Below are positions 7,395 through 42,816 of a stretch of 64,000 bases of DNA, in pieces. The position numbers and the translations under genes are program-made. Below the pieces are notes generated by a model that ran no database searches, was not told the origin of the DNA, and worked only from the letters and a program-made list of their open reading frames with translations. The number at the start of each line of letters is the position of its first letter. The stretch's first letter is position 1. The stretch is from IMG/VR virus record IMGVR_UViG_3300032293_002041, positions 62,001 to 126,000 of that record; one strand, given 5' to 3'.

Positions 7395-8044
7395 TCATAG
7401 AATTTTCAACATATGATATCTCGCTATCTGATCAAGAGATAAAAACAAGTTTAGAAAAAGCTATAGTTTTTAAACCTAAAACTATCTGCTTGCTCCCTCC
7501 ACACATAAAGATGACCAAAAATCTTGTTCCAGACGATATTTTAGTATCAACTGTTATAGACTACCCTCTTGGAGTTTTGGATACCAAAAACCGAAATCAA
7601 GCCATAGAGTCATCCATCAAGTCTGGCGCACAAATTATTAATGTTGTTGCTCAACCTTATTATTTTTGCAATAGAAAATATGACAAATTTAAAGATGATA
7701 TTAAAAGTAATCTAGAAATTTGCAATAAATATTCCGTGGAGTTAAGATATATTTTAGAGTATAGAGTTTTTACATATGAATTACTCTATAAAGTATCTCA
7801 AATTTTATTAGATCTTGGAGTATATACCATATATCCATCTACAGGATATCAATTAGACGATATTAGTGACAATATTTTAGCATCAGCACTGATAAATAAA
7901 AAAGTTCCCATCAATATCATTTGTAATGGAAATATTTGGAATATTAGCCAAATTACTAACATAAATAAGGGCAATTTGTATGGATTGAAGGTTAATTCTA
8001 TTAATGCTTTAAAATTATTATCTAAAAATAATCAGTCTTCTTAA
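7391..8044 (+). CDS. Deoxyribose-phosphate aldolase (DeoC)-like protein, probably catalytically inactive
   Basis: TVIDYPLG, GAQIINVV, YILE, YPSTG match the DeoC scaffold, but the catalytic Asp and Lys positions are substituted. Confidence 0.7.
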   Translation: MIIEFSTYDISLSDQEIKTSLEKAIVFKPKTICLLPPHIKMTKNLVPDDILVSTVIDYPLGVLDTKNRNQAIESSIKSGAQIINVVAQPYYFCNRKYDKFKDDIKSNLEICNKYSVELRYILEYRVFTYELLYKVSQILLDLGVYTIYPSTGYQLDDISDNILASALINKKVPINIICNGNIWNISQITNINKGNLYGLKVNSINALKLLSKNNQSS

Positions 8045-8091
8045 GTTTTAGGGTATACTAATAATAGTTTTCTAACACAATGGAGATTACC

Positions 8092-8634
8092 ATGGCAACA
8101 GCAAAAGTTAACGGTTCATCATATACTATTCCTCCAAATAGAAATGCTAGTGGCTCCCAAAATAATCGTGGTTCTGCTGCTAGAACAGGTTCTTCAAGCA
8201 CATTATCAACCGTATCTGTCTCAAGATACAATACAACAGTATTTGCTTCAACTGTTATTAATAACGGTTGGGCAGATAAGGCTGTTGATGCTGGCACATT
8301 TGCCTACAGCGATAGTAATGGCGTGGGAATGAGATATACCACAACACTAGCTGGCGTTAGCAACAATGCTTTACGAAGTGGCGCTGACGTTCCATCACTA
8401 GTTGAAGGTATTCATCGCCTAAGAGTTCTTAGAACACGCAGATTTACCACAGCAATTAGGGCCAACAAGTATAATAGATTTACTGGTCAATTCGAAGGCG
8501 GTTATCCAGTAGTAGCTAGTGACTCATTAGCAACTGACGTAGCTGCCACCCCAACCAGAGCAGTCCCAGGTAAAATTGTTTACAAGCTCGGCCAGCCTGT
8601 ACCATCTACTCAGAATTATTCATCTGAGTCTTGA
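8092..8634 (+). CDS. Putative virion structural protein (Ser/Thr/Ala-rich)
   Basis: GGAG SD before ATG 8092; composition typical of structural proteins; followed by a terminator. Confidence 0.55.
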   Translation: MATAKVNGSSYTIPPNRNASGSQNNRGSAARTGSSSTLSTVSVSRYNTTVFASTVINNGWADKAVDAGTFAYSDSNGVGMRYTTTLAGVSNNALRSGADVPSLVEGIHRLRVLRTRRFTTAIRANKYNRFTGQFEGGYPVVASDSLATDVAATPTRAVPGKIVYKLGQPVPSTQNYSSES

Positions 8635-8657
8635 TTATTACTATAAGTTTGTTGCAC

Positions 8658-8695
8658 AAAGGCCACTGATACCTATGGTGTCTGTGGCTTTTGTT
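8658..8695 (+). terminator. Intrinsic terminator
   Basis: AAAGGCCAC-TGATACC-TAT-GGTGTCT-GTGGCTTTT hairpin followed by a T-rich tract. Confidence 0.65.
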
Positions 8696-8713
8696 CTTTA
8701 ATGGAGAATAATT

Positions 8714-9028
8714 ATGCATGAAAGTCATGTCTGGCAAATATTAGCAACCACCTGTTTTGGTATTATCGTAACCCTAGTAACATTTTGGGCCACAATAGTA
8801 CGCAATATGGTAACTAAGTCAGAGATCGAAAATCTAATACAAACCCATTCTCCATATATGCAAGATAGGCAATTTATTATGGAGAGATTGGCCTCTAATA
8901 AAGAAACCCAAACAGCTTTTTCTAATGCTCTTCAAAGAAATACGGAAGTTATGACTGAGCTTAAAATCCAGATTGCAACACTTGGTAAAACATTAGAGGC
9001 TTTGGAAGATAGAATCGAAAGACCCTAA
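8714..9028 (+). CDS. Single-TM coiled-coil protein (holin/XhlA-like)
   Basis: N-terminal hydrophobic helix, C-terminal heptads (IATLGKTLEALEDRIE), GGAG SD. Confidence 0.45.
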   Translation: MHESHVWQILATTCFGIIVTLVTFWATIVRNMVTKSEIENLIQTHSPYMQDRQFIMERLASNKETQTAFSNALQRNTEVMTELKIQIATLGKTLEALEDRIERP

Positions 9029-9029
9029 A

Positions 9030-9042
9030 TGTGTATTTATAA
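9030..9042 (+). promoter_or_regulatory. GGTGTATW-like motif
   Basis: TGTGTATTTATAA directly after stop 9028, upstream of ATG 9081. Confidence 0.4.
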
Positions 9043-9080
9043 CTAGTTAAATTTATCATCAATTCAAATTGGAGATTAAA

Positions 9081-9302
9081 ATGTCAAGACCATTCACTGA
9101 TATAACAGTAGCTATTTCAGGTAATCCTATCAAAAACGGAACATTGGTTGATACTACTAGCAAAACTGGATATTATTCTCATTATGATCGTTATGTGCTC
9201 AATACTCCGGCTTCAGGCACTATAGCTAATAAGTATGGCTATAGATTTTATAATGGTATTTTTGTAGAATTAGTCGGCAACCAAACAGTAATAGGTGGAT
9301 AA
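9081..9302 (+). CDS. Small hypothetical (possibly structural) protein
   Basis: GGAG SD before ATG 9081. Confidence 0.55.
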   Translation: MSRPFTDITVAISGNPIKNGTLVDTTSKTGYYSHYDRYVLNTPASGTIANKYGYRFYNGIFVELVGNQTVIGG

Positions 9303-9562
9303 TGAGTATTCAAAGAATAAATGATTTTCCATTAGCCAGTGGATTAACTAGCGACGATATATTTCTAATCATGGACGACCCATCAGGATCTGCTTTAACA
9401 AAAAAAGTATCGGTATCTGTGCTTCATTCTGGATTAGTTCAAAGTAATACTGGTTTAGTTAATAATTCTGTCCGTATCACAAACATGATTAGTATCTCTC
9501 AAAGTAACTACGACAGTCTCGCCACAAAAGATGCTAATACCTTATATATAGTTAATGGTTAA
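9302..9562 (+). CDS. Tail-fibre-associated small protein
   Basis: RINDFPLASGLTSDDIFLI and ISQSNYDSLATKDANTLYIV are motifs typical of phage fibre/adaptor segments. Confidence 0.55.
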   Translation: MSIQRINDFPLASGLTSDDIFLIMDDPSGSALTKKVSVSVLHSGLVQSNTGLVNNSVRITNMISISQSNYDSLATKDANTLYIVNG

Positions 9563-9574
9563 GGACAAATTTGT

Positions 9575-10447
9575 ATGCCCACAGTAAATAGTGATATATT
9601 TTTAAGTAACTCTAATATAACTTCTATTAAATTAGGAAATACTAGTGTTTCTAAAATATTCCTTGGCGAGAATCTAGTATTTGGAAGTACCTTAGAAAGC
9701 TGTACTGACTCAGTCGCTAGCGTTAAAATGACAGGGTGGGCTTCTGGTGATAGGACTCTTGCTCCTATTGGATATGCTCCTTATGGTCGTGAGACCTATA
9801 CCTATGGAGATGAAACTGTCCGATATGAAACGGGGGTATGGCTTTATATTGGCGCAGAAGGAGAAATTACGAGAGCATATAGTTATGCAAACTATCCTTG
9901 GTTAGTAAACTGGCCAGCTCCTTATTCTGGTGAGAAGTTTTGTAGTTTTGGTAGTTCTGGGTTTCAGTGGATGAATATCAGCTCTGTTACTTCAACCACC
10001 GCTTCTGGAATTGGTCAAAACAATATCACGATCTCAATAACACAAACTGGCGGAGGTATGGATGCCCACGATGGCATGGTTGGTGGCACAACCTTTCCCG
10101 AAGCTTACGGAGTACCACTTAGTGGAACTCAAATTAAGAATACTCAAGCAGGTATCTTTACTGCGACTTTCAGTCAACCTGTTAACGATGCGTTAGTTGC
10201 ATTTGCTAGTGTTGGTCAGCAAGGTACCCCAGTTCCTGTACAAGTATCAGCACCATTTACTCCAATATGGGAAACTCTTACAACATATCAAAATTCAGTA
10301 AGTGGCACTCAATATTCTCAGTTTACTGGAGAAGAGGGATATAATATAATTAGAATAGATGGAACTGTAACTACTGTAACTTTCAATTATACTGTTAGTG
10401 AAAATTATTGTACAGTTTGTTTCGGATTTGTTGATCAAAATGCATAA
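9575..10447 (+). CDS. Putative tail fibre / receptor-binding protein
   Basis: N-terminal ITSIKLGNTSVSKIFLGENLVF (fibre-like); beta-rich Ser/Thr/Gly composition. Confidence 0.5.
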   Translation: MPTVNSDIFLSNSNITSIKLGNTSVSKIFLGENLVFGSTLESCTDSVASVKMTGWASGDRTLAPIGYAPYGRETYTYGDETVRYETGVWLYIGAEGEITRAYSYANYPWLVNWPAPYSGEKFCSFGSSGFQWMNISSVTSTTASGIGQNNITISITQTGGGMDAHDGMVGGTTFPEAYGVPLSGTQIKNTQAGIFTATFSQPVNDALVAFASVGQQGTPVPVQVSAPFTPIWETLTTYQNSVSGTQYSQFTGEEGYNIIRIDGTVTTVTFNYTVSENYCTVCFGFVDQNA

Positions 10448-10455
10448 TGCTAATT

Positions 10456-10469
10456 GGTGTATTATATAT
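10456..10469 (+). promoter_or_regulatory. GGTGTATW motif
   Basis: Intergenic GGTGTATTATATAT upstream of ATG 10504. Confidence 0.55.
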
Positions 10470-10503
10470 CAAACATATAATCTATTTTTAATTGGAGCTA
10501 AAA

Positions 10504-10836
10504 ATGGTCAAACCCGGCTATAGAACAAGTGAATTTTGGTTCACAGTAGTTAGCTTTATATTTAGCGGTTTATATCTAGTGGGAATTATTGGAGAAAATT
10601 CTCAAAAAGAAGATCTTATCCAAGAAACTACCAGAGGACTAGAAGCTACAATTCTTGTTATCGGACAATTAACGGTATTATTTAAATATATCAATGGAAG
10701 AACAGATCTGAAAAAGACTTGGTGGAATACAGCAACTCCAGAAGAAAGAAAAGAAGCAAATAAAAAGAACGATAAACCAGTAACAGTAAGAAAAAAGAGA
10801 AAAACAAATGGAAAACCAAAACCTACCAGTAAATGA
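10504..10836 (+). CDS. Holin-like two-TM protein
   Basis: KPGYRTSEFW followed by two hydrophobic helices and a highly basic C-terminal tail. Confidence 0.5.
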   Translation: MVKPGYRTSEFWFTVVSFIFSGLYLVGIIGENSQKEDLIQETTRGLEATILVIGQLTVLFKYINGRTDLKKTWWNTATPEERKEANKKNDKPVTVRKKRKTNGKPKPTSK

Positions 10837-11233
10837 TCTTGGGAATTTAATAGTCAAAGCCAAAGAAATACTTAAAAATGCAAAAGCAGTAGCAATGCCA
10901 CAAGCATGGAACATCTTGCAATTAGCTACAGCTGAAGTTATTCAAACTGTAGAAAATAATAATCCCTCTCTTAAAGGGGTTGACAAAAAAACACTAGCTA
11001 TGGGTATGATCTCTAAGTTTTATGATCAAGTATTTACAATAATAAATTTTCCATTTGTGCCACAAGTTTTCCAGCCTATTATACAGAAGTATGTGAAACA
11101 GATTCTCATGCTTTTGGTTAGTGCCACTATTGATGCTTTAGTTACCACTTTTAGAAATAGTGGAATTTTTGTTGATCCTAGTTACAAAGTTGATCCTACC
11201 CTAGATAATAATCCAAAAGTTTCAGACAAATAA
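10808..11233 (+). CDS. Hypothetical amphipathic-helical protein
   Basis: Overlapping ORF in the same operon, 141 aa. Confidence 0.6.
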   Translation: MENQNLPVNDLGNLIVKAKEILKNAKAVAMPQAWNILQLATAEVIQTVENNNPSLKGVDKKTLAMGMISKFYDQVFTIINFPFVPQVFQPIIQKYVKQILMLLVSATIDALVTTFRNSGIFVDPSYKVDPTLDNNPKVSDK

Positions 11234-11243
11234 GGAAAATAAA

Positions 11244-11660
11244 ATGAATTTTACAGAGAGCTTCCAAGAATTTAGCAGTCGTTTGAGCACAACGGATTTG
11301 GCTCTTTATGCTGGTGCTGGTATCATACTATGGGTATTGTTTAAGGATAAACTTAGCCCTGTTCAGAGTTTATTGATGTCTCTTATGAATAAAGCGAAAG
11401 GTTTGACTAGAGAAAGCACTGGTACGCTTCCAATGGTTGATGTTCCAGCTGTTGTTCCAGCTGTTGATCTAGTTGTTTTACCAAAAGCTGTTAGCGTTAG
11501 CGATAAAGATGATATATTCTTTAAGCTGGTTGTGTCGTGGAAACAAACTCGTGACCTAGCAGAAAAGAGCGGTTGTGTTGAAGCTATTAAGGTTGCTGAT
11601 CAGATGTTTCCATTTCTAAGTCCCAATGTATGTGCTAAAAAAGAGGATAAAGTGATATGA
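11244..11660 (+). CDS. Hypothetical membrane protein
   Basis: AAGGA SD; TM segment LALYAGAGIILWVLF. Confidence 0.6.
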   Translation: MNFTESFQEFSSRLSTTDLALYAGAGIILWVLFKDKLSPVQSLLMSLMNKAKGLTRESTGTLPMVDVPAVVPAVDLVVLPKAVSVSDKDDIFFKLVVSWKQTRDLAEKSGCVEAIKVADQMFPFLSPNVCAKKEDKVI

Positions 11661-12148
11661 AAAATAATATCTTATTAGTAGTAGCTGGATTATTAGTTTT
11701 GATTGGATTAATAGGATTTGATTTTGGTAAACTTAATGTTGTACCAAATAGACCTAACTCTATTGATGTATTAGAACTACCAGAACCAACAGACGAAGCT
11801 ATTAAAAAAGAAGCTGACGATGTTGTTGCAGTACTAAAAGAGTCTGAAGCAAAAAGTGACGCTAAGAGATTACGAGACCTGTATCTTGATTTAGCAAAAC
11901 TAGTTGAGCTTGATGGTGAAGATGAAGTAATTAAAAGTACAGAAGAAATTCGTCAAGCAAATAGTTTGGCCGGTGTTATGCTCAGACTAGATATTAAGGG
12001 TAAATATCCTAATTTAGCTAAAGAAGCTAAAGAAGTGGTAGTAGCTGCTATTGGAGACGATCAAATTCCTTTATCAAAAGAGCTAAGAACTAAGGCTGTA
12101 GAAGGTCTTAATGCTTTAGCCTGGGCTTTTAACATAGGATCAAAATAA
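11657..12148 (+). CDS. Hypothetical exported/membrane-anchored helical protein
   Basis: N-terminal signal/TM (MKNNILLVVAGLLVLIGLIG). Confidence 0.6.
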   Translation: MKNNILLVVAGLLVLIGLIGFDFGKLNVVPNRPNSIDVLELPEPTDEAIKKEADDVVAVLKESEAKSDAKRLRDLYLDLAKLVELDGEDEVIKSTEEIRQANSLAGVMLRLDIKGKYPNLAKEAKEVVVAAIGDDQIPLSKELRTKAVEGLNALAWAFNIGSK

Positions 12149-13071
12149 TGAGTAGATTTTCTCCTAAAGAATTATACGATAATTATCGCAAAGGATTTAG
12201 TGGATGCATCTGGGAAGAGCATGTATTCAATCATCTGATGGAAACTTCTAAGTATCCACTATTTGGTGCTGCTAGTAAAAGAATTAGTGGCAGTGGTAAA
12301 GGAAAACTGTCAACACCATATAAGAGTGTGTTAAAGTTTGATAAGCATCCTTATAATGAAAGACAAACTACCGGGGATTGTGTTAGTCATGGAACACGAA
12401 ATGCTTGTGATGTAACCCGAGCCGTAGAAATAGATGTGCACAATGAGAGAGAAGATTGGATAGCAAAAGGTGCTACAGAAGCTATCTATGGATACAGAGG
12501 ATTCAGCGGACAAGGTATGAGTTGTGCCAGAGCAGCTGAATTTGTTAGTAAGGTTGGCGGTCTTGTGGTTAGAAAGAATTATGGGTTTGTGGACTTTAGT
12601 AAATACAATGGTAATCTAGGTGCTGGCTGGGGAGGTCGAGGACTTCCAGACAAAGTATTAGATCTAGCTAATGACCACCAAATTAAGACTGCTTCATTAA
12701 TACGAACAGTAGAAGAAGCTCGTGATGCTCTTGCTAATGGTTATGGATTAGCAGTATGTTCTAATTATGGATTTAGCAATACTAGAGATAAAAAGGGATT
12801 TGCTAGAACATCTGGTAATTGGGCTCATTGCATGGCTTGGATAGCTTGCGACGATACTGGTGGTGAGCCAGCATTCTTAGTACAAAATAGCTGGGGTAAA
12901 TGGAATGACGGAGGACATCCAGAATGGGGTCCAATCCCAGATGGTTCTTTTCTTATTCATGCTGATGTAGCTGCTGGAATGTTATCTGCTAATGGTTCGT
13001 ATGCCTTTAGTGGCTTCGATGGCTTTCCATTACAAAAACTACCAAGCTATGGATTTGAAGACTATCTATAA
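12148..13071 (+). CDS. Papain-like cysteine peptidase (C1 family)
   Basis: QTTGDCVSH (oxyanion Gln plus catalytic Cys), WAHCM (His), VQNSWG (Asn). Confidence 0.85.
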   Translation: MSRFSPKELYDNYRKGFSGCIWEEHVFNHLMETSKYPLFGAASKRISGSGKGKLSTPYKSVLKFDKHPYNERQTTGDCVSHGTRNACDVTRAVEIDVHNEREDWIAKGATEAIYGYRGFSGQGMSCARAAEFVSKVGGLVVRKNYGFVDFSKYNGNLGAGWGGRGLPDKVLDLANDHQIKTASLIRTVEEARDALANGYGLAVCSNYGFSNTRDKKGFARTSGNWAHCMAWIACDDTGGEPAFLVQNSWGKWNDGGHPEWGPIPDGSFLIHADVAAGMLSANGSYAFSGFDGFPLQKLPSYGFEDYL

Positions 13072-13107
13072 GATAATTTAATCAAAGATAATCAGGCATG
13101 AGGAATT

Positions 13108-13122
13108 GGTGTATTAATATAA
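13108..13122 (+). promoter_or_regulatory. GGTGTATW motif
   Basis: Intergenic GGTGTATTAATATAA upstream of ATG 13151. Confidence 0.55.
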
Positions 13123-13150
13123 TACCTATCCTTTTACAGAGATTATTTCT

Positions 13151-13348
13151 ATGAGATTAATAGATAGAATAGCTCTAAATAGAGCAATCCAAATGGCTTT
13201 AAATTTTATCTTAGCTATTGTTAAGATGTTCGATAAAAGCACTCCAGAAGATAAGCCAGATGGTCCCGTTAAACCAAAACCATCGCCTAAACGCAGACCT
13301 TTAAAAGATCTGATAGATAATGTTGTCCCATGGAGAGAACAAAAATGA
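13151..13348 (+). CDS. Small hypothetical protein
   Basis: Amphipathic N-terminal helix and Pro/Lys-rich tail. Confidence 0.55.
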   Translation: MRLIDRIALNRAIQMALNFILAIVKMFDKSTPEDKPDGPVKPKPSPKRRPLKDLIDNVVPWREQK

Positions 13349-13689
13349 ATAAATTATTTGTTGGTTTATTCTGTATGGGTTTGTTATTCACTCAGTCATC
13401 CTACTATGGCTCTACAACAGCCCCTGTAACCCTTGCTGGAGGAATTATTAAAGCTAAACACACTCAGGAAGCTACACAAAAATATAAAAGAAAAGATTGC
13501 CCAGTTTGTAAAGGCAAAGGCTGGTATATGAGTGGTGATGGTATATTAAAAATTGATTGCACATACTGTGAACCAGATAAAAGCTCGATATCTGTTGGAC
13601 CAATAACTTCTATCAATCCAAAACCTACAACAGAAAGCCCAAACTGCACAAGCGGTCAATGTAAACCATCTATTATAATTAGGAGATAA
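13345..13689 (+). CDS. Exported CxxC zinc-finger protein
   Basis: Signal-peptide-like N-terminus from ATG 13345; CPVCKGKG...CTYC and CTSGQC. Confidence 0.55.
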   Translation: MNKLFVGLFCMGLLFTQSSYYGSTTAPVTLAGGIIKAKHTQEATQKYKRKDCPVCKGKGWYMSGDGILKIDCTYCEPDKSSISVGPITSINPKPTTESPNCTSGQCKPSIIIRR

Positions 13690-13691
13690 TC

Positions 13692-14090
13692 ATGGCAGAC
13701 AACGAAAAGTTAAAAGCTATTGCTATTAAAGTCCTAGAAAAATCTAATGTTCCCAAAGAAGATAATTATGGTTTTGCAATAGTGACTGTGTTGATGATTA
13801 TTAGTATAATATTAACTTGTATAAGAATATTGCAAGAATGTAATAAGAATAAATTATCGACTTCCTCAACAGAGTCTGATAAGTATAATCTATATGGAGA
13901 GCAATTAAAAACATTCAGCACAAAGCGTGGATGGTTTACCAAAATGAGAATTAAGAAAATCTTAAGAAGAGAGATGACCAGAGAAGACTACGAAAAATAT
14001 TCTTTTGCTATATTATCAGCTTTGCTAGATACAGGAGAAGTTCTCACGGATGAGGAGGTTATTACTTTAGTGGAGGCAGCCAATGTTTAA
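13692..14090 (+). CDS. Hypothetical membrane protein
   Basis: AGGAG SD; TM FAIVTVLMIISIILTCI. Confidence 0.6.
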   Translation: MADNEKLKAIAIKVLEKSNVPKEDNYGFAIVTVLMIISIILTCIRILQECNKNKLSTSSTESDKYNLYGEQLKTFSTKRGWFTKMRIKKILRREMTREDYEKYSFAILSALLDTGEVLTDEEVITLVEAANV

Positions 14091-14334
14091 TATTTTAGTA
14101 TGGTGTGTTTATGGCATATTTGTTGGCAGTATTGCTAAGAGTTTAGTTCCAGGCGAAGAAAATTTTGGATTCATCAAGACAGTTGCTTTAGGTGTAGCTG
14201 GTTCTTATATGGGTGGAGCATTACTTTATATGATTGGTCAGTATAGCACAGTAAGTCCAGCTGGTATATTTTCTGGGGTTGTTGGAGCTGTTATATCCTT
14301 GGTGTTGTACAATAAACTAGCGACATCAAAATGA
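14083..14334 (+). CDS. GlsB/YeaQ/YmgE (transglycosylase-associated) membrane protein
   Basis: W..GIFVGSIAK.LVPG, LGVAGSYMGG, GVVGAVISL; three TM helices. Confidence 0.8.
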   Translation: MFNILVWCVYGIFVGSIAKSLVPGEENFGFIKTVALGVAGSYMGGALLYMIGQYSTVSPAGIFSGVVGAVISLVLYNKLATSK

Positions 14335-14335
14335 C

Positions 14336-15883
14336 ATGCTTACCCCAAGACAACTCTATTTATCCTATTCGTTAAATCCATGTATTTTAGGCTCCGAATC
14401 TGGAGGAGTTGGATTAGGAACTCCGTATAGTCTACCAAGATTAATCAAATTTTTAAAACATCTAAAATATCCATGTATAGAATCTACTCCAAATATTGAA
14501 AATATAAGAGATACTGGAAAACAAAGGATCGGCATACCATATAAATTTTTATGTCGTGTGGATGCTGAGGCTTTTTGTGAAATTCAGCCAACGATTAGTA
14601 GTGGTTCTTCTCATGCTGTTAGAAATTCTGTTGATATAACACGAGCATGTGATCTTGAAGTATCAAATAATTATTCTTTATGGCAAAGCAGAACAGCCAC
14701 AGAATATATCCAGCATTTTGGAGGCAACTCATTAGTTGACTGCTTGATGACTTTAGGACCGGATTTAGTTTCCGATGAAACTGCTCAATCCAGAGCTACT
14801 GGTTGCGGTATAATGACTTGCTTACCAAATACACAATATGGAGCTGCTGGGGCATTACATTCTTGTACTAAATTAATGGGTGAGTTAACTGCTAAGTGTC
14901 GTAGTTGTAAAACCTGTAATAGTGATCCACCAGATCCACTTGATCCATGTTGTAATCCTGGTAATTGCACAGAGTATACTAATAAGTGTTGTGGAGGAAT
15001 AATAACAGATAGAGATGATTTTTCATTCTGGGTACCATCTGACGATAATTATTTTAGTGGTAATCAATTAGATGGATTTGTTGGTAAAATTCTTAAACAT
15101 ATTGGTATTCTAAAGAGAAAAAGCTATGGAGGATATGGTAATTTTATAGATAATAGTGGGCCTAATTTCTATGGATGTAGAGACGATGTTTTTTTAAAGT
15201 ATTTTCAAAGCATTAATGGATATAATTATACTGATGATACTATCATACCGCAAACAACCCCTCCAGCCACTAGAATAGATAGATGCAGATCCATCTGCAT
15301 GATTAACTATACTGATATGAATAGAAATATTGGCATGATCAAAGATTTAATTTATAATGGTTATGGTATCGTATTAATGACTAATGTTGGTTTCCCAGAT
15401 TTTCGTGATTCTACTGGATTAAGTTATCCAGATAAAATTTGGTATCACTCATATTCTATCATAGGATACGATGATACTAAACTACAATATCCTGAATGCG
15501 TTTATTTACTATCTAATAGTTGGGGTGAATGGAACAGCGGAGGAGAGCCATTCTGGGGACCAATACCCAAAGGAAGTTTTTTGGTTACTGAAAGCCATTT
15601 ACGATCCATGATATCTTTTAATCAATCGCCCAGCTACAAAGGCTGCAAAGCAAGATATTGTCCTCCACCATGTACGAATCCCAGTGAATATGCTGCTTGT
15701 AGCGAAGACTCTAGCTGCGTACCATTTGAATGTACAGACAGACAAAGAGCATTCGGATTAGTTTTTGCATTATCTACTACAGAAGGTTTTACAAAGAGAA
15801 CTCTTAACTATAAACAATTTTTACCAATAAATAAACTAAGATCATTAAATCAACCATCAGAACTATTTTTTAAGAGCTATTAA
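14336..15883 (+). CDS. Papain-like paralog lacking the catalytic Cys, with Cys-rich insertions
   Basis: Colinear with 12148..13071 (SHAVRNSVDITRA, ATE, NGYG, WYHSY, LSNSWGEWN.GG..WGPIP.GSFL); no Cys at the nucleophile position. Confidence 0.7.
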   Translation: MLTPRQLYLSYSLNPCILGSESGGVGLGTPYSLPRLIKFLKHLKYPCIESTPNIENIRDTGKQRIGIPYKFLCRVDAEAFCEIQPTISSGSSHAVRNSVDITRACDLEVSNNYSLWQSRTATEYIQHFGGNSLVDCLMTLGPDLVSDETAQSRATGCGIMTCLPNTQYGAAGALHSCTKLMGELTAKCRSCKTCNSDPPDPLDPCCNPGNCTEYTNKCCGGIITDRDDFSFWVPSDDNYFSGNQLDGFVGKILKHIGILKRKSYGGYGNFIDNSGPNFYGCRDDVFLKYFQSINGYNYTDDTIIPQTTPPATRIDRCRSICMINYTDMNRNIGMIKDLIYNGYGIVLMTNVGFPDFRDSTGLSYPDKIWYHSYSIIGYDDTKLQYPECVYLLSNSWGEWNSGGEPFWGPIPKGSFLVTESHLRSMISFNQSPSYKGCKARYCPPPCTNPSEYAACSEDSSCVPFECTDRQRAFGLVFALSTTEGFTKRTLNYKQFLPINKLRSLNQPSELFFKSY

Positions 15884-15885
15884 TT

Positions 15886-18798
15886 ATGGCTATATCTAAA
15901 TGGTGTGACATAAATTCATGGTTTAAAAATGATAATTTTTCAATACCTGCAAATAAAATTCCTATCAATGAGATTGATGATATAATTATAGAAGACAATG
16001 ATTATTTATTTAATGTTCTAGATAACTCATGTTATAGCCGTATTCCTTCTTTAGTTTGTAATAATTTATATGTCATCCCTGGTTTTCTTGATAATGTAGG
16101 AAATGATATAGATGTTATATTTTCTTGTCAAAAACTAATAGCCTCAAATGTTGTAATAAATTCTGGTATTATTTGTATAGATTGGGATAACAATATTTGC
16201 GAGTGGACTGTCAAATCATTCAGTGGATTCAATAAGTTTGTTAAATTATATTGTACATCAGAAGAAAACTTCTGGCTATCAAATAGTATATCTAGAGAAA
16301 TATATCTAAATTGTCCTCAATACATTTCTTTAAATGAGTGTACCTTCAACAAAGGACGTATACAAACAGAAAATGGTAAAATAAGTGGTACATCATTAAA
16401 TAATATAAATTTAATAGGCATTTATGATATAGTAAGTAGCGAGCTGATTAGTTGTACTGGCAATGGAGAATTTAAATTTTTAAATAATTCTAAAAATTCA
16501 TCAACTATATACGGAGATACATTATTTTTAGAAAGTAAGAATGATTCTAAAAGTATCATATATGGACCTAGTATTTTTTCTGGAATAAATAGCAGTATAA
16601 ATAGTGGTATTATTGTAGGTGATTGTACTTTTTTTAATTCACAAAATTTTGGTACAATATCGGGAAATGCAATTTTTACTAGTGGATCTATAAATAGCGG
16701 CGTTGTTACAAATGATGCTATTTTTTATTCTGGTACTATTAATTATGGAAATATTTTTGGAGATGCGATTTTTGAATATAGTAATAATTATGGTATGGTA
16801 TCTGGAAACGCTGTTTTAAATACAGGAAATAATTATGGTAAACTACTAGGTGGTTCTACATATATGTCATCTGGCTTGAATACCAAAGATGGTTTTATTA
16901 GCGGACTTCAAATTCAACTAATTAATTCTTCAAACGAAGGACAAATTAAATGTCCACTTGCTTCTACAGGAGCAGAGAGTTCTACTTGTTCTTTAATTGA
17001 ATCAGATAATCAAAATATTTTAGTTGCAAATACTATCAATACAAAGCGTATAATTACAACAGGCTACCCCAAACCATTCAATGGTCTATCGGGCACAATT
17101 ACTTGTGAGTCTATATCCATTGGAAGCGGATATTTTAATGGAGGAGATATAAGTTCTTTAGACTATACTTTTATGTCAACTTCTTCCAATGACGGTACGA
17201 TTGGTCCCGGAGTAGTTGTACCAATTTCAGAAACCACAAATAAACCAGATATTAGTAGGAGTTATCAGTCTGGAACTGTAGTATTTAATTCTGGTTGTCA
17301 TAACAATGGAATCATACTATCTCCATGTATATCAACTTTTAATAACGCTATTAATTTAGGAAATATTTCTGGCGGATGCATTTTTAATAAATTAAGCTAT
17401 AATTTATCAAGTATAAATGCTAATAATTATGATATTATTTATTTTAACGATATAAGCATTAATAAAGGTACTATATTATCTAGTTCTAGTCAAACAATTT
17501 TTAATGATAATTCATTAAATGATGGAACTATATACTCTTTTGTCTATTTTAATAATAGATCAAAAAATTCAGAGACAGGAAATATAAGATATGCTTCTTT
17601 TAAAGACTTATCACAAAACTCTGGCAGAATTGAAAATGGTTATTTTTTTAATGATGCAATTAATAATGGATTCATAACTAACAGTGGTGATTTCTTTGAC
17701 TCATCACAAAACCTATATCCAGCAAAGATTAGCGGTGTGGTTAATTTTTATAATGCTAGCATTAATTCTGGAGATATTAACTTAGCAAATGCTAAATTCT
17801 ACGATAACTCTAAAAACTATGACTATATATATGGTAACAGATCTAAATTATTTTTCGACAACTCACAGAATTTTGGATCTGTAAATAACGCTAAATTTTA
17901 TGACACGTCAGTAAATGTAAGGTTTCTGTTAGGAATTACTGAATTTTATAACAATAGTTCTAATAAGGGCTCATCTAGCTTTGATGATGATACATATTTC
18001 TATGATGACAGCACTAATAATGGACTAATAGATAAAGCTTTTTTCTTTGACCGAAGTACTAATCAGCATAATATAATAACATATAGTGGTCTTGATGGAT
18101 TAATTATATTTAATAATAGTTCACAAAATTTACAACCAATACAAAATAGAACAATTATTTTTAATGATACCAGCTCGAATCAAAGTACACTAAAAATTAT
18201 TCTAACACCTCAATATTCTCCTAGCGGTAATACTATTAACTTTAATACTCAGGCTGAGAATAGAAGCGAAATTATAGAATATAATTCAATTATTTTTTCT
18301 AGTGGAGCAGAGAATTACGGGGATATATCCGTTACTGGCACTGGCTGTATGCTAGTTTTTCAAGACGGTTCTATTAATTTAGGTTATATTAATATAAATA
18401 ATGATGTTCAATTTCAAAATGCAATAAATTCTGGTAGCATAAGAAATCAAGCACATTTTGAAGATAGCACAAATTTTGGAAAAGTTCCATATGCTACATT
18501 TAATAATAGTATTAATTCTGGTATAATTAACTATGGTATATTTATGCAAAATTCTACAAATTTAACTAATATAGCGAGTGGTGTATTTAATAATTCTAAT
18601 AATTCTGGCTATATTTTTCAAAACGGTATATTTAGCACTTATTCATCTAATCGAGGAAATGTAGGAAATAATGCAGATTTTACAGATTATTCAGCAAATT
18701 ATGGTATTATAAATGGAAATGGATCTTTTTTCACTTACTCATGCAATTATGGAACAGTACTAGGAGAGCTTCTGACAGATTCGTCGTGTACAGGTTAA
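15886..18798 (+). CDS. Asn/Ser/Gly-rich beta-solenoid repeat protein (putative virion fibre/adhesin)
   Basis: Many approximately 16-18 aa repeats of S.N.G.(I/V)..(A)..F, e.g. SQNFGTISGNAIF, SINSGVVTNDAIF, SNNYGMVSGNAVL. Confidence 0.65.
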   Translation: MAISKWCDINSWFKNDNFSIPANKIPINEIDDIIIEDNDYLFNVLDNSCYSRIPSLVCNNLYVIPGFLDNVGNDIDVIFSCQKLIASNVVINSGIICIDWDNNICEWTVKSFSGFNKFVKLYCTSEENFWLSNSISREIYLNCPQYISLNECTFNKGRIQTENGKISGTSLNNINLIGIYDIVSSELISCTGNGEFKFLNNSKNSSTIYGDTLFLESKNDSKSIIYGPSIFSGINSSINSGIIVGDCTFFNSQNFGTISGNAIFTSGSINSGVVTNDAIFYSGTINYGNIFGDAIFEYSNNYGMVSGNAVLNTGNNYGKLLGGSTYMSSGLNTKDGFISGLQIQLINSSNEGQIKCPLASTGAESSTCSLIESDNQNILVANTINTKRIITTGYPKPFNGLSGTITCESISIGSGYFNGGDISSLDYTFMSTSSNDGTIGPGVVVPISETTNKPDISRSYQSGTVVFNSGCHNNGIILSPCISTFNNAINLGNISGGCIFNKLSYNLSSINANNYDIIYFNDISINKGTILSSSSQTIFNDNSLNDGTIYSFVYFNNRSKNSETGNIRYASFKDLSQNSGRIENGYFFNDAINNGFITNSGDFFDSSQNLYPAKISGVVNFYNASINSGDINLANAKFYDNSKNYDYIYGNRSKLFFDNSQNFGSVNNAKFYDTSVNVRFLLGITEFYNNSSNKGSSSFDDDTYFYDDSTNNGLIDKAFFFDRSTNQHNIITYSGLDGLIIFNNSSQNLQPIQNRTIIFNDTSSNQSTLKIILTPQYSPSGNTINFNTQAENRSEIIEYNSIIFSSGAENYGDISVTGTGCMLVFQDGSINLGYININNDVQFQNAINSGSIRNQAHFEDSTNFGKVPYATFNNSINSGIINYGIFMQNSTNLTNIASGVFNNSNNSGYIFQNGIFSTYSSNRGNVGNNADFTDYSANYGIINGNGSFFTYSCNYGTVLGELLTDSSCTG

Positions 18799-39908: not shown

Positions 39909-40945
39909 TAACATATCTAAGAAGTAGTTCTTATGGCACTCACTCAATGTGTCCACAGCAATATTTTTTTGAATATATTCTTGGCTTAAGATCTCCGTCT
40001 AATAAAAAAGCTGACAAGGGGACTGTGGTGCATAAAGTTCTAGAGATATTGGCATATGTCAAACTTAATCAACAAAATAAAATAAATATTTTTGAAGACG
40101 ATGTTGTTGGTTCTGTGAATATTAATAATTACAGCTTAAATACGATCATAGAAAAAGTATATAAATACTATACCTCAAGATTCACCCACCACGAATGGGA
40201 CATAAAGGATTATAAAGATTGTCACGGATGGGTTTACAAAGCCCTAGAATACAATGGTGGCATGTTTGACCCTAGGAATAGGGACATAGTGCAGCCAGAG
40301 CAGCATTTTGACATAGAGATTAAAAAACCATGGTCTTCTTATAAATACGATACTAAAGATGGATTACTAGAAGGTAATTTAGCTATCAAGGGCACAATAG
40401 ATCTTATCACCAGGATTAATGATAAAACCTTAGAAGTAATAGACTGGAAGACTGGAAGAAGACTAGATTGGGCGACAGGAGAAGAAAAAACCCAAGAAAA
40501 GCTACAAAATGATCCTCAACTAAGAATATATCATTATGCTATACAACATTTATATCCAGAAATTGAGCATGTTATGATCTCTATTGATTTTATTAATGAC
40601 GGTGGGGCATTTACTATTTGTTTTGACAAAAGCGATCTTTTCAAAACAGAAATCATGCTTAAGAATAAATTTGAAACTATTAAGAATACACAAAAACCTC
40701 AACTTAATAAAACCTGGAAATGTACTAAGCTATGTCATTTTGGGAAAACAACATTTGAGAATACTTCCATAGCTCCAATAATAGAATACAGAGATAATCA
40801 GATAACACCAAAAGATAAGTGTATGACTAAGTGCGAGCAAGTAAAGCATGATATAGACACCAAAGGCACAGAAGTCGTGATTGACGAATATCAAACTCCG
40901 GGTTATAGTATTGGACACTACAAGGCACCCGGAAGCACCGCATGA
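39902..40945 (+). CDS. PD-(D/E)XK (Cas4/RecB-like) exonuclease, probable non-canonical start
   Basis: YLRSSSY...CP, GTVVHKVLE, KGTIDL, IDWKTG, QLRIY, C-terminal Cys cluster. The conserved N-terminal motif lies upstream of the first ATG (39947). Confidence 0.8.
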   Translation: MIITYLRSSSYGTHSMCPQQYFFEYILGLRSPSNKKADKGTVVHKVLEILAYVKLNQQNKINIFEDDVVGSVNINNYSLNTIIEKVYKYYTSRFTHHEWDIKDYKDCHGWVYKALEYNGGMFDPRNRDIVQPEQHFDIEIKKPWSSYKYDTKDGLLEGNLAIKGTIDLITRINDKTLEVIDWKTGRRLDWATGEEKTQEKLQNDPQLRIYHYAIQHLYPEIEHVMISIDFINDGGAFTICFDKSDLFKTEIMLKNKFETIKNTQKPQLNKTWKCTKLCHFGKTTFENTSIAPIIEYRDNQITPKDKCMTKCEQVKHDIDTKGTEVVIDEYQTPGYSIGHYKAPGSTA

Positions 40946-42816
40946 AAAATTATACTCCGCTCCATTGTCATTCGATGTATAGCTTATTGGATGGATTGTC
41001 TCAGCCAAAAACAATGGCCGAAAGATGTCAAGAAATTGGAGCATCTTCTTGCGCTCTAACAGATCATGGTAACATAGCCGGAACTGTTAAGTTTTATACT
41101 GAAATGAAAAAGCATGGTATCAAACCCATATTGGGTTGCGAGCTATATATTTGCAACGATAATCCATCAATACAAAGCAAAGAGAATAAAGATCTTAGTC
41201 ATTTTGTAATATTGGCAAAAAACTTTGAAGGATGGAAAAGCTTAATCAGAATAACTTCAGAGTCTAATAGGCCAGACTTCTATTATCACAAGCCGAGACT
41301 CAGCCTATCAACCCTAGCGCAGTTCTGCAACAACAATATTATTGGTTTTTGCGGACATGCTGGTTCAACTATAGCTGACAAGATTATGCTAGGAGAAAGT
41401 CTAAATCCAGATTGGAAAGAAATTGGCATTCAACAAATCGGCCTATATAGAGAGATATTTGGTAGAGACAATTTTTTTCTTGAAGCCCAATTAATGGATT
41501 CAGAAAACTCACCAATTCAGAAGATATTGACCGATGCGATGAGAGAGCTTGCAAAGCATACCTCTACCAAGATTATAGCCACACCAGACGCTCATTATTG
41601 CCGCAAGGAGGACGCAATTGATCAAAGAGTACTGCTGTGCAATAATTTAAAAACAACCTTCCCAGAGATCAGCAGGAAGATCACGAATGATGAGGAAGTT
41701 CCTCTTGGCTGCTTTTTTACATCTGACAACTTTCACATATTATCTCAGGAAGAAATACGATTATTTCACACAGAGGAAGAAATCGAGAACACCAATTTTG
41801 TGGCTAATTTATGTGAAGAATATAATATTTTGGATAAGCCACAATTACCACCATTTCCATGTCCAAACAATCTGGACGATGCTGAGTATCTGAGAGAATT
41901 ATGTAGAAACGGATGGAGAGAGAAAATTGCCAATGATATCCCAAAAGAAGACCATGGTAAGTATGTTGATAGGATTAAATATGAGCTTGATGTTTTACAG
42001 GGAGCTGGGCTATCAAGCTACTTTTTGATTGTGCAAGATATTGTGAATTATGTTAGGTCTAATAATTGGCTCCCAGGACCAGGAAGAGGAAGTGCTGCTG
42101 GTTGCTTAGTCTCTTATTTAATCGGTATTACTAGTATAGACCCGATTAAGTATAATCTTCTTTTCGATAGATTTTACAATGCTGGTCGTAATAGTAAAGA
42201 CCATATCTCAATGCCAGACATTGATGTGGACGTACCAATTAATAAAAGAGAAAATGTTATCGAATATATTAAACAGTGCTACGGAAAAGACAAGGTGTCT
42301 CAAATGATAACATTCAATACGATTAAAGGTAGAGGAGCTATCAAGGATGTCTTAAGAGTATATGGTAATATATCTTTTGATGAGATGAATAAAATTACTA
42401 AAAGTATTCCAGATGAGTCCAAAATTGCCGACGATCTTCAAGAAATGAAAGAAGAAACCGGAGAAGCATCAATTATTAGATGGGCTTTAGAAAATCAGCC
42501 AGATAAGCTTAGGGAGTGGTGTTTTATCGATGAAAAGAACGAATTACAAGGACCACTTGCAAAAAGATTTGAGCAGGCTATAAGATTGGAAGGCACCAAG
42601 TCTAATCAGTCCAAACATGCCGCTGGTATAGCCATTAGTGCCAATCCATTAAATATATCATGCCCAATGGTTTATGATTCAAAAAACGAACAGATGATAG
42701 CTGGCATGGAAATGCAAGATTTAGAATCGTTAGGTATAATTAAGTTTGATATTTTAGGTGTAGCGATGTTAGATAAAATTATGACTATTCGAGACATTTT
42801 AAGAACAGGAGAATAA
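40942..42816 (+). CDS. dnaE: DNA polymerase III alpha, N-terminal part (PHP + palm/thumb)
   Basis: LHCHSMYSLLDG, LTDHG, GPGRGSAAGCLV, MPDIDVD, KHAAG, KFDILG; the ORF stops shortly after. Confidence 0.92.
   Translation: MKNYTPLHCHSMYSLLDGLSQPKTMAERCQEIGASSCALTDHGNIAGTVKFYTEMKKHGIKPILGCELYICNDNPSIQSKENKDLSHFVILAKNFEGWKSLIRITSESNRPDFYYHKPRLSLSTLAQFCNNNIIGFCGHAGSTIADKIMLGESLNPDWKEIGIQQIGLYREIFGRDNFFLEAQLMDSENSPIQKILTDAMRELAKHTSTKIIATPDAHYCRKEDAIDQRVLLCNNLKTTFPEISRKITNDEEVPLGCFFTSDNFHILSQEEIRLFHTEEEIENTNFVANLCEEYNILDKPQLPPFPCPNNLDDAEYLRELCRNGWREKIANDIPKEDHGKYVDRIKYELDVLQGAGLSSYFLIVQDIVNYVRSNNWLPGPGRGSAAGCLVSYLIGITSIDPIKYNLLFDRFYNAGRNSKDHISMPDIDVDVPINKRENVIEYIKQCYGKDKVSQMITFNTIKGRGAIKDVLRVYGNISFDEMNKITKSIPDESKIADDLQEMKEETGEASIIRWALENQPDKLREWCFIDEKNELQGPLAKRFEQAIRLEGTKSNQSKHAAGIAISANPLNISCPMVYDSKNEQMIAGMEMQDLESLGIIKFDILGVAMLDKIMTIRDILRTGE

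Follow-up and report, generated by a model that had tools for sequence, protein, structure and literature searches.

In the complete 229-kb genome of a freshwater jumbo phage, a conserved block of small membrane-protein genes surrounds a papain-like cysteine peptidase and an exported thiol-redox protein. The block was examined in a window of 64,000 nucleotides (positions 62,001 to 126,000 of IMG/VR record IMGVR_UViG_3300032293_002041), where it comprises nine co-oriented genes behind two copies of the motif GGTGTATT (Table 1). The observation made in an earlier note is confirmed, because each of the elements it listed is present: the motifs, a holin-like gene, several membrane or exported proteins, an intact C1 cysteine peptidase without a signal peptide, an exported CxxC protein, and a GlsB/YeaQ/YmgE protein.

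Table 1. Features of the peptidase block and its downstream neighbor (window coordinates; close relatives are 80 related jumbo-phage contigs; L numbers denote distant phage or prophage loci).
Coordinates	Strand	Feature	Properties and occurrence
10456..10463	+	GGTGTATT promoter-like motif	Intergenic; 36 nt upstream of the first cassette gene
10492..10836	+	Small membrane protein, 114 aa (110 aa from the likelier start, the ATG at 10504)	One strong and one moderate hydrophobic segment and a very basic, Lys/Arg-rich C-terminus; holin-like by description only; no Pfam or PHROG family; in 75 of 80 close relatives, not found in distant loci
10808..11233	+	141-aa membrane or exported protein, a conserved companion of the peptidase	Hydrophobic C-terminal half; no known family; its profile hits 31 distant phage loci, on the same strand, ending about 0.5-0.7 kb upstream of the peptidase ORF, and also Bremerella prophage L185
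11244..11660	+	138-aa membrane or exported protein, function unknown	Weak hydrophobic segments; in 78 of 80 close relatives only
11657..12148	+	163-aa protein with an N-terminal membrane anchor and a compact helical domain	Stop overlaps the peptidase start by one base; homologues (alignment A3) directly upstream of the peptidase in L092, L093, L096, L098, L184, L186, L188, and L210 (E 1.5e-25 in L210); model pLDDT 86, all-helical domain at residues 47-162; no informative fold match
12148..13071	+	307-aa papain-like (C1-type, clan CA) cysteine peptidase, the proposed lytic enzyme	No signal peptide or N-terminal hydrophobic segment; most conserved gene of the block (median 85% identity)
13108..13115	+	Second GGTGTATT motif	Intergenic; 43 nt upstream of ORF 13151
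13151..13348	+	65-aa basic protein, uncertain gene	One weak hydrophobic segment; found by tblastn in 28 of 80 close loci
13330..13689	+	119-aa exported protein	Signal-like N-terminus; two CxxC motifs (CxxCxGxG...CxxC, zinc-ribbon or redox)
13692..14090	+	132-aa membrane or exported protein, function unknown	One strong TM at residues 29-47; in 73 of 80 close relatives only
14083..14334	+	83-aa GlsB/YeaQ/YmgE (PF04226) membrane protein, the best holin candidate	Three hydrophobic segments; PF04226 Transgly_assoc at E 2.5e-7, 31.2 bits against a cut-off of 25.3
14336..15883	+	515-aa paralogue of the peptidase, a variable neighbor outside the conserved core	Gly at the nucleophile position; Cys-rich insert of about 190 aa; present at more than 60% coverage in only 11 of 80 close loci

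The GGTGTATT motif occurs nine times in the window against 3.7 expected, a count reached by 1 of 100 shuffled sequences. Of the 19 copies in the genome, about 12 lie 17-64 nt upstream of start codons on both strands, including those of the RNR, PhoH, and tail-fibre genes. The motif is therefore promoter-like but not specific to lysis genes.

The 307-aa peptidase has no Pfam or PHROG hit on its own, and its identity rests on three results. In an alignment of 44 sequences, Gln73, Cys78, His227, and Trp249 are invariant, whereas Asn247 and Ser248 are near-invariant. The profile built from this alignment hits xylellain (3OIS) over its full length, as well as the papains. Lastly, the AlphaFold model (pLDDT 94.7) has the papain/C1 fold and matches 254 PDB chains at E<=0.001; every listed match is a C1 peptidase, with xylellain, Der p 1, cathepsins B/K/L, and papain at the top. 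In many homologues, inteins sit exactly at Cys78, after His227, and at Asn247-Gly250, which marks these positions as the most constrained sites. The family has 1,464 clusters at 50% identity.

The block is kept as a unit while its flanks vary. Apart from the doubtful 65-aa ORF, cassette genes are present in 73-80 of the 80 close loci, whereas the flanks are present in 10-25. Beyond these relatives, four genes travel with the peptidase in very distant phages: those for the 141-aa protein, the anchored 163-aa protein, the exported CxxC protein, and the PF04226 protein. The PF04226-like gene starts 2-10 nt after the peptidase stop in 57 of 72 distant phage loci. An exported thioredoxin or CxxC protein follows the peptidase closely in L185, L186, L209, L210, and the window; it comes directly after the peptidase in L185, L209, and L210, whereas one small gene intervenes in L186 and in the window. 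The CxxC protein of the window is homologous (hmmsearch E 2.2e-12; BLASTP E 5e-11) to the N-terminal half of the L210 protein, which also carries PF00085 Thioredoxin. In addition, 60 of 85 distinct distant homologues of the peptidase have a strongly hydrophobic N-terminal segment before the catalytic domain.

Synteny in related phages and prophages, which the earlier note had named as a way to test its reading, places the peptidase where related phages keep their lysis genes. In small temperate phages and prophages it occupies the two classical lysis-cassette positions, either after the tail genes and before the integrase or directly upstream of the large terminase. For example, in phage locus L133 the tape measure and tail genes are followed by a 123-aa protein, a 184-aa protein with a TM, the peptidase with a TM, and a 75-aa PF04226-like protein, and then by an integrase on the other strand. 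In Blastopirellula marina prophage L186, TM proteins, the TM-anchored peptidase, and an exported Thioredoxin_7 protein lie directly upstream of TerL and portal, whereas in Bremerella prophage L185 the same genes follow the tape measure and tail genes.

The earlier note saw no classical lysin in the window and suggested searching the rest of the genome for classical endolysins. Six-frame scans of the whole DTR-bounded, 100%-complete genome (G000) gave no match above threshold to any of 12 common peptidoglycan-hydrolase families, namely Phage_lysozyme, Amidase_2, Amidase_3, SLT, GH19, GH25, GH108, M23, M15_4, VanY, NlpC/P60, and CHAP. The same result was obtained for three other complete or near-complete genomes that carry the peptidase, G605 (42 kb, DTR), G607, and G609. 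This absence rests on 12 Pfam models, and most of the 289 ORFs have no annotation. No spanin pair is recognizable either.

The interpretation offered in the earlier note is partly supported. The evidence agrees that the block behaves as a functional, envelope-directed module. However, the claim that the peptidase stands in place of a muralytic endolysin presumes that it is not muralytic, whereas papain-superfamily enzymes such as CHAP, NlpC/P60, and PeiW/PeiP are established wall peptidases (PMC10318531; bioRxiv 10.1101/2025.01.22.634383), and this enzyme may simply cut peptidoglycan stem peptides. The rationale of a host with a protein-rich wall is outdated because Planctomycetes do have peptidoglycan (PMC4432640). 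The suggestion of a planctomycete host is half right; it fits a different branch of the family. Of 34 hits in cellular genomes, 26 are Planctomycetota, although the search patterns came from that branch. The enzyme of the window falls in a separate, well-supported clade made only of metagenomic sequences, and the phage, whose host is unknown, has 35.6% GC, against 55-70% in most planctomycete loci.

Comparison with known systems shows both shared and distinct traits. With family C1/clan CA peptidases (xylellain, cathepsins B/K/L, Der p 1, and papain), the enzyme shares the two-lobe fold and the Gln-Cys...His...Asn-Ser-Trp catalytic set, and its N-terminal ~70 residues align with pro-regions of zymogen structures. 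However, it falls below the PF00112 thresholds, with only 3 of 44 relatives giving weak hits, and its Gln-Cys and His-Asn spacings are 5 and 20 residues, against 6 and 16 in papain. It belongs largely to a phage family, with sporadic prophage and chromosomal copies in bacteria, and is cytoplasmic or membrane-anchored rather than secreted as a classical zymogen. The papain-superfamily lysins, which include CHAP (C51), NlpC/P60 (C40, including D29 LysA N4; bioRxiv 10.1101/2025.01.22.634383), Amidase_5, and the pseudomurein endoisopeptidases PeiW/PeiP (C71) (PMC10318531), are Cys-His enzymes with a papain-like core that phages use to cut wall peptides. Those are minimal single-lobe domains, usually fused to wall-binding modules, whereas this is a full two-lobe C1-type enzyme that the CHAP and NlpC/P60 models do not match. 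No member of the family was seen fused to a recognized wall-binding domain, although phage proteins with a C1-like fold fused to peptidoglycan-binding-like or amine-oxidase-N wall-binding modules appear among the BFVD matches.

Canonical holin-endolysin(-spanin) cassettes, such as lambda S-R-Rz/Rz1, and signal-anchored or SAR endolysins, such as P1 Lyz and phage 21 R, likewise cluster small membrane proteins with one hydrolase and lie after the tail genes or before the terminase in temperate phages. Soluble and N-terminally anchored versions of the present enzyme also occur in different phages, and thiol chemistry near the enzyme recalls the disulfide caging of P1 Lyz. In contrast, the enzyme here is a C1-type peptidase rather than a glycosidase, amidase, or metallo-endopeptidase, a separate exported thioredoxin or CxxC partner is present, and the anchors are strongly hydrophobic rather than weakly hydrophobic as in SAR domains. 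The PF04226 family is listed in TCDB as a putative 'T-A holin' (1.E.43; PMC6281302), but this function is only putative and most members are cellular stress proteins; no description of tight coupling to a peptidase gene was found. Baculovirus V-CATH is another virus-encoded C1 peptidase used at the end of infection to break down host structures and release progeny, and viral cathepsins appear among the weaker fold matches. However, V-CATH belongs to a eukaryotic virus, is secreted as a zymogen, and works with chitinase on tissue, with no holin logic and no close relationship to this family.

We consider it more likely than not that the block is the phage's lysis cassette, of holin-endolysin type, and that the C1-like peptidase is its lytic enzyme. 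The analysis demonstrates the fold and catalytic residues of the peptidase, the conservation of the block, the co-occurrence and fixed order of the partners across distant phages, the lysis-slot positions in small phages and prophages, the membrane anchors on most distant homologues, and the lack of matches to 12 classical lysin families in four genomes. Lytic function, its timing, the identity of the holin, the role of the redox partner, and the substrate are inferences. There is no experimental or expression evidence, and no RNA run was listed. Other observations weigh against this reading. In this jumbo phage, the cassette lies in the plus-strand block with nucleotide-metabolism, glycosyltransferase, and replication genes, and its promoter-like motif is shared with RNR and PhoH; late timing is therefore not shown. 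The enzyme is far more conserved than endolysins usually are, and inteins are more typical of replication or packaging genes. Moreover, copies in Isosphaeraceae and a Balneolaceae genome are chromosomal and lack phage neighbors, signal peptides, and anchors, where a purely lethal lysin would not be expected.

Among the alternatives, a membrane-associated protease system with a task other than lysis, such as host take-over, cleavage of envelope or defence proteins, superinfection exclusion, or envelope remodeling during infection, is the least improbable, although it is still unlikely. The location of the block among early or middle-type genes that share its promoter-like motif, the chromosomal copies, which indicate that cells can tolerate the enzyme, and the catalytically dead paralogue in the same genome favor this view. 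However, it does not explain why the gene occupies the lysis slot in temperate phages and prophages, why a putative holin-family gene is coupled to it 2-10 nt downstream, or why four genomes showed no match to 12 common lysin families.

A morphogenetic or processing protease, which would mature the prohead or cut the giant 1,400-7,700-aa proteins into working pieces, is improbable. In its favor, the genome encodes ORFs of 7733, 4061, 2716, 1819, and 1441 aa, no prohead protease was recognized between portal and major capsid protein, and the peptidase is very strongly conserved. Yet the gene is about 85 kb from the head module and on the other strand, and in small phages it lies among membrane proteins rather than between portal and capsid. 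Neither the membrane anchors of its homologues nor the exported partners fit work inside a capsid. A virion-borne entry enzyme that opens the wall locally is similarly improbable. The gene follows the tape measure and tail genes in small phages, and in the window it is followed by a variable 970-aa repeat protein and the dead paralogue, which look like host-interaction genes. However, N-terminal anchors and adjacent small membrane proteins are not features of tail lysins, the Blastopirellula gene is far from the tail genes, and in the jumbo phage the gene lies outside the structural block. Chance grouping of unrelated genes is very unlikely and is already contradicted by the synteny counts. 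Most of the small ORFs have no family match and five are found only in close relatives, but four partners recur with the peptidase, in the same order, across clades that share 35-45% identity and differ by 20-30 points of GC, and the block is retained while its flanks turn over.

In the favored model, the peptidase would accumulate folded in the cytoplasm, because it has no signal peptide, until one or more of the small membrane proteins permeabilize the inner membrane. The conserved PF04226 'T-A holin'-type protein is the likeliest to do so, and the 2-TM protein at 10492 is a second candidate. The peptidase would then reach the wall and cut peptide bonds that hold it together; the substrate is unknown and may be peptidoglycan stem or cross-link peptides or wall-associated proteins. 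The membrane-anchored 163-aa helical protein and the 141-aa protein would be conserved accessories of unknown role. The exported CxxC protein, fused to thioredoxin in relatives, would work outside the cytoplasm as a redox helper, either keeping the catalytic thiol reduced or opening disulfides in the substrate.

The phage genome analysed here (G000) is a single 228,972-bp virus record with direct terminal repeats, an estimated completeness of 100% and 35.6% GC, and it belongs to a tailed jumbo phage. The window is bases 62001-126000 of this record. Large terminase, portal, major capsid protein and tail fibres reside on the minus strand, together with a series of giant ORFs that make up about a quarter of the genome and were not analysed. 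In contrast, the plus-strand block of the window holds sugar-modifying enzymes, ribonucleotide reductase (RNR), PhoH, DnaB, primase and a two-piece DNA polymerase. No tRNAs occur in the window, and genetic code table 11 was used throughout. The coordinates of the features are collected in the table.

Coordinates of the features discussed, in the window or in the complete genome (G000)
Feature	Reference	Coordinates	Strand	Description
GGTGTATW motif	window	2553, 7329, 10456, 13108, 27454, 30110		Also at other sites in G000; GGTGTATT at 10456 and 13108, in intergenic gaps 36 and 43 nt before the next start
Cassette ORFs	window	10492-14334	co-oriented	Tightly packed; several with hydrophobic segments
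CxxC protein	window	13330-13689		119 aa; signal-like N-terminus and CxxCxGxG...CxxC motif
PF04226 protein	window	14083-14334		Three hydrophobic segments
Peptidase paralogue	window	14336-15883		515 aa; His and Asn-Ser-Trp kept, Gly at the nucleophile position; insert of about 190 aa within a protein carrying 27 cysteines
Repeat protein	window	15886-18798		970 aa; Asn- and Ser-rich, weak pentapeptide-repeat signal
DNA polymerase (phrog_405), two pieces	window	40942-42816 and 43712-45340		Profile positions 42-614 and 616-1071
ORF between the polymerase pieces	window	43021-43719		232 aa
Giant ORFs	window; G000	55128-63278; 125281-183868	-; -	2716, 1819, 1441, 7733 and 4061 aa, head to tail beside the structural module
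Peptidase	G000	74 kb	+	307 aa
Terminase, portal, major capsid protein and tail fibres	G000	160-205 kb	-
Head module	G000	197-205 kb	-
Tail-fibre-like protein	G000	190811-193519	-	902 aa; starts with an Mtd_N (major tropism determinant) domain
Neighbouring protein	G000	193615-195375	-	586 aa; FGE-sulfatase / C-type-lectin-like domain

Every element that the earlier note described from the sequence alone is present. The GGTGTATW motif occurs 19 times genome-wide, and about 12 copies lie 17-64 nt upstream of starts on both strands, including those of the RNR, PhoH and tail-fibre genes. The motif often continues as TATTAT or TATAAT. It is therefore a general promoter-like element rather than a lysis signal, and is probably a phage promoter element shared by metabolic, cassette and structural genes. 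The last gene of the cassette matches PF04226 above its cut-off (E 2.5e-7, 31.2 bits against 25.3) and, with its three hydrophobic segments, agrees with the 3-4 TMS of the T-A holin family (TC 1.E.43). The function of this family is only putative even in TCDB (PMC6281302), and the formation of lethal membrane lesions that release an endolysin was not assayed here.

The 307-aa peptidase gave no match on its own in Pfam, in PHROGs, among PDB sequences or, by tblastn, in 50,697 GenBank phage records. Nevertheless, it belongs to a very large family, with 1,823 close homologues at 90% clustering and 1,464 clusters at 50% identity. Only an alignment profile and a fold model identified it. In an alignment of 44 members at 33-52% identity, Gln73, Cys78, His227 and Trp249 are invariant and Asn247 and Ser248 are at least 90% conserved, which is the papain catalytic set, including the oxyanion-hole Gln. 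The alignment profile matches the C1 peptidase xylellain (3OIS) over its full length, and papains over the His...Asn-Ser-Trp block. The AlphaFold model is confident (pLDDT 94.7, pTM 0.93) and has the two-lobe papain-like fold. A Foldseek search with this model returned 254 PDB chains at E<=0.001, every listed match being a C1 peptidase, many of them zymogens, with xylellain 3OIS as the best (E 5e-10). Among predicted viral structures, the matches include phage 'Peptidase C1A' proteins, and some phage proteins there join this fold to peptidoglycan-binding-like modules. The ESM Atlas places the protein in clusters that are 84-100% viral. However, the window protein gives no hit to Pfam PF00112, only 3 of 44 relatives give weak hits (best E 3.6e-4), and family member P0219 scores 19.5 bits against a cut-off of 20.7. 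Consequently, the protein is filed as a C1-like clan CA family and not as a PF00112 member; peptide-bond hydrolysis by a thiol mechanism was not measured. The 515-aa paralogue that follows the cassette is probably a pseudo-enzyme.

Longer family members were examined for fused domains. Ten of them carried no wall-binding domain. The extra length in one, P0234, is due to inteins, with Hint and LAGLIDADG Pfam hits, whereas the remaining nine had no Pfam hit that explains their length. Many homologues of 640-1200 aa (P0121, P0122, P0124, P0126, P0130, P0132, P0139, P0150, P0159, P0186 and P0234) are the same peptidase interrupted by one to three inteins of about 230-420 aa. These inteins occupy three insertion sites: immediately before the catalytic Cys78 (junction ...HN/CVSHG), between His227 and Cys228 (...H/C...HN/CMAW) and at Asn247-Gly250. 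To our knowledge, inteins have not been described at all three catalytic motifs of a peptidase.

Synteny in related phages and prophages, which the earlier note had proposed as a check, shows that the block is kept together. In 80 IMG/VR contigs whose peptidase is 80-96% identical, the cassette genes, in which a hydrolase is clustered with small membrane proteins, are found in 73-80 loci, apart from a doubtful 65-aa ORF. The flanks, in contrast, turn over: the 290-aa gene upstream is present in 25 loci, the 515-aa paralogue in 11 and the 970-aa repeat protein, a hypervariable gene next to the cassette, in 10. The peptidase is the most conserved gene, at a median 85% identity against 55-76% for its neighbours. 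Five of the nine cassette genes are confined to these close relatives, whereas others extend much further. A second set of 72 IMG/VR loci has a peptidase about 35-40% identical to the representative used as query, P0262; searches with two other distant representatives, P0205 and P0183, found no IMG/VR loci. The 72 loci come from high-GC contigs, mostly fragments, the longest 42-60 kb; ORF calls in high-GC loci used simple heuristics. In one of them, L133, the gene order is tape measure, tail genes, a 123-aa protein, a 184-aa membrane protein, the peptidase and a 75-aa membrane protein, followed by an integrase on the opposite strand. Profiles built from the cassette genes of the window recover three of these neighbours: the 141-aa protein in 31 loci, the anchored 163-aa protein directly upstream in 4 loci, and the PF04226 protein in 57 of 72 loci, always on the same strand and starting 2-10 nt after the peptidase stop.

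In 60 of 85 distinct distant homologues, the ORF begins with a strongly hydrophobic segment before the catalytic domain, and the enzyme there is a membrane-anchored, outward-facing protein. The window enzyme has no N-terminal transmembrane segment, unlike signal-anchored or SAR endolysins; it is the soluble form of the same enzyme, which would be holin-dependent. The same split is seen among classical endolysins, some of which are soluble and holin-dependent and others signal-anchored.

A pattern scan of one genome per prokaryotic species found 34 loci, 26 of them in Planctomycetota, including complete genomes of Tundrisphaera and isolates of Bremerella cremea and Blastopirellula marina. Two kinds of context appear. 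In the Blastopirellula prophage (L186), the anchored peptidase lies among small membrane proteins, is preceded by a homologue of the 163-aa protein, and has an exported Thioredoxin_7 protein two genes downstream; the large terminase and portal come next. In the Bremerella prophage (L185), the same set follows the neck, major tail and tape-measure genes. Thus, in L133, L185 and L186 the peptidase occupies the lysis slot, after the tail genes or before the terminase, although its position in the window's own genome is uninformative. In contrast, in Isosphaeraceae (L169, L172, L176 and L183) and in a Balneolaceae genome (L179) the gene is chromosomal, unanchored and surrounded by housekeeping genes rather than by a prophage. 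The Isosphaeraceae neighbourhood is syntenic, next to an ORF read by eye as 6-phosphogluconate dehydrogenase and with a conserved 426-aa gene downstream, which suggests domestication by cells. HMM surveys show that the family is rare in cells, with strong hits in 5 of 301 Planctomycetota genomes, including one seed, and in 2 of 301 Bacteroidota genomes, both of them seeds.

An exported thiol-redox protein is a recurrent neighbour of this cysteine peptidase in both major clades of the family. In L210, a 47.7-kb contig whose peptidase is closer to that of the window, three genes stand in a row: a lipoprotein-like homologue of the 163-aa protein (E 1.5e-25), the peptidase, and a membrane-anchored protein with three CxxC motifs and a thioredoxin domain. 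The N-terminal half of the latter is homologous to the 119-aa CxxC protein of the window (E 2.2e-12 by profile, 5e-11 by BLASTP). In L209, a 170-kb low-GC relative, an exported protein with three CxxC motifs follows the peptidase directly. The two planctomycete prophages complete this pattern. For the 163-aa neighbour itself, fold searches with its model returned only generic helical bundles (Foldseek E above 1, VIA Z of 7 or less), within the noise range for helical proteins. A complex prediction of the peptidase with the soluble domain of this neighbour gave no answer (score 0.02), which is no evidence either way on whether the two interact.

A search of the rest of the genome for classical endolysins had been proposed in the earlier note. 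Six-frame HMM scans for 12 Pfam families (Phage_lysozyme, Amidase_2, Amidase_3, SLT, GH19, GH25, GH108, M23, M15_4, VanY, NlpC/P60 and CHAP) found nothing above threshold in G000 or in three complete or near-complete small phages that carry the peptidase (G605, G607 and G609), whereas control genomes responded in each search. This absence, which rests on 12 profiles, is supportive of a lysis cassette but does not define one. Two sub-threshold signals were dismissed. A 15-bit NlpC/P60 signal in the 902-aa tail-fibre ORF was not reproduced by hmmscan, which found only Mtd_N, and an M15_4 signal lies inside the DNA polymerase gene and is spurious. The Mtd_N protein and its 586-aa neighbour form a combination that recalls targets of diversity-generating retroelements; a reverse transcriptase was not sought. 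Likewise, no spanin of the Rz/Rz1 or unimolecular type was recognised: no lipobox ORF occurs in any frame of window positions 8000-16000, except for a false hit inside the peptidase, and the anchored 163-aa protein is predicted to fold as a compact helical bundle rather than an extended coiled coil.

The simplest reading of these data is a lysis cassette in which a C1-like cysteine peptidase takes the place of the endolysin, and this reading is considered more likely than not. The fold model, the conservation of the block and its recurrent neighbours are results of the analysis, whereas the lytic role, the choice of holin, the task of the redox partner and the substrate are inferred. Release would come from one of the small membrane proteins, of which the PF04226 protein is the best-supported candidate because of its tight, conserved coupling to the peptidase. 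The exported CxxC/thioredoxin protein implies chemistry outside the cytoplasm. It may protect or uncage the catalytic thiol in an oxidising compartment, as a trans-acting analogue of disulfide control in P1 Lyz, or it may reduce disulfides in the substrate. What the enzyme cuts is open, and degradation of the host wall was not assayed. Papain-superfamily lysins that cut wall peptides are well known, and a muralytic peptidase is thus the conservative guess, with proteolysis of wall proteins as the more novel alternative.

The remaining possibilities share the rest of the weight: a non-lytic membrane protease role, a morphogenetic protease and an entry enzyme. No experiment or transcript data bear on the cassette, and the timing of its expression in the jumbo phage is not known. 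A prohead protease would be expected as a soluble enzyme packaged in the prohead and encoded between portal and major capsid protein. However, the peptidase gene is distant from the head module and on the other strand, and its relatives are membrane-anchored. Within the lysis reading, a more far-reaching version is not excluded but is regarded as unlikely. In this view, the cassette is a proteolytic, redox-assisted lysis system, in which the exported thioredoxin/CxxC protein opens disulfide cross-links in wall or outer-layer proteins and the C1 peptidase then digests them, such that lysis would depend on protein degradation rather than peptidoglycan degradation. This route would suit hosts such as Planctomycetota, whose prophages carry the same enzyme, and it would be widespread (more than 1,400 sequence clusters) in environmental phages.

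The interpretation offered in the earlier note, an envelope-breaching module suited to a host with a protein-rich wall such as a planctomycete, is supported only in part: the module idea is well supported, the host idea is unproven for this phage, and the rationale is outdated, as Planctomycetes do possess peptidoglycan (PMC4432640). A quick, unfinished maximum-likelihood tree splits the family into two clades, each with 100% SH-aLRT support. The window protein sits with metagenomic sequences only, whereas all the planctomycete, prophage and small-phage sequences sit in the other clade. Because the scan of cellular genomes used patterns from that second clade, its planctomycete bias cannot be carried over to this phage. 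The 35.6% GC of the phage also differs from the GC content reported as higher for freshwater Planctomycetes (PMC6461901). Other routes to a host gave nothing: cluster names carried no taxonomy, the HMM survey hits are too sparse to assign one, and the 'moraphage' paper (PMC12619734) could not be linked to this phage. Moreover, near-identical or sister peptidase sequences are assigned to MAGs of different phyla, namely L188 (Pirellulales) versus L184 and L190 (Chitinophagales MAG), L133 versus L192 (Limnocylindrus MAG), and L167 versus L168 (Saccharibacteria MAG). This probably reflects phage contigs mis-binned into MAGs, and the non-planctomycete labels among the 34 cellular loci should be read with care.

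Phage lysis is taught as holin plus a peptidoglycan hydrolase. Here, a very large and mostly unannotated family with the predicted papain C1 fold sits in the lysis slot of related phages and is found from jumbo freshwater viruses to prophages of cultured Planctomycetota, coupled to a putative-holin family (PF04226) and to an exported thiol-redox protein. If the reading is confirmed, a new class of lysin and a new accessory function, redox activation or substrate reduction, would join the lysis toolkit, and the 'T-A holin' family would gain a testable role. It would also provide a handle on how phages open the envelopes of Planctomycetota, for which full-text literature searches turned up no description of lysis genes. 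Furthermore, it would allow annotation of a lysis module in thousands of metagenomic phage genomes that currently appear to have none.
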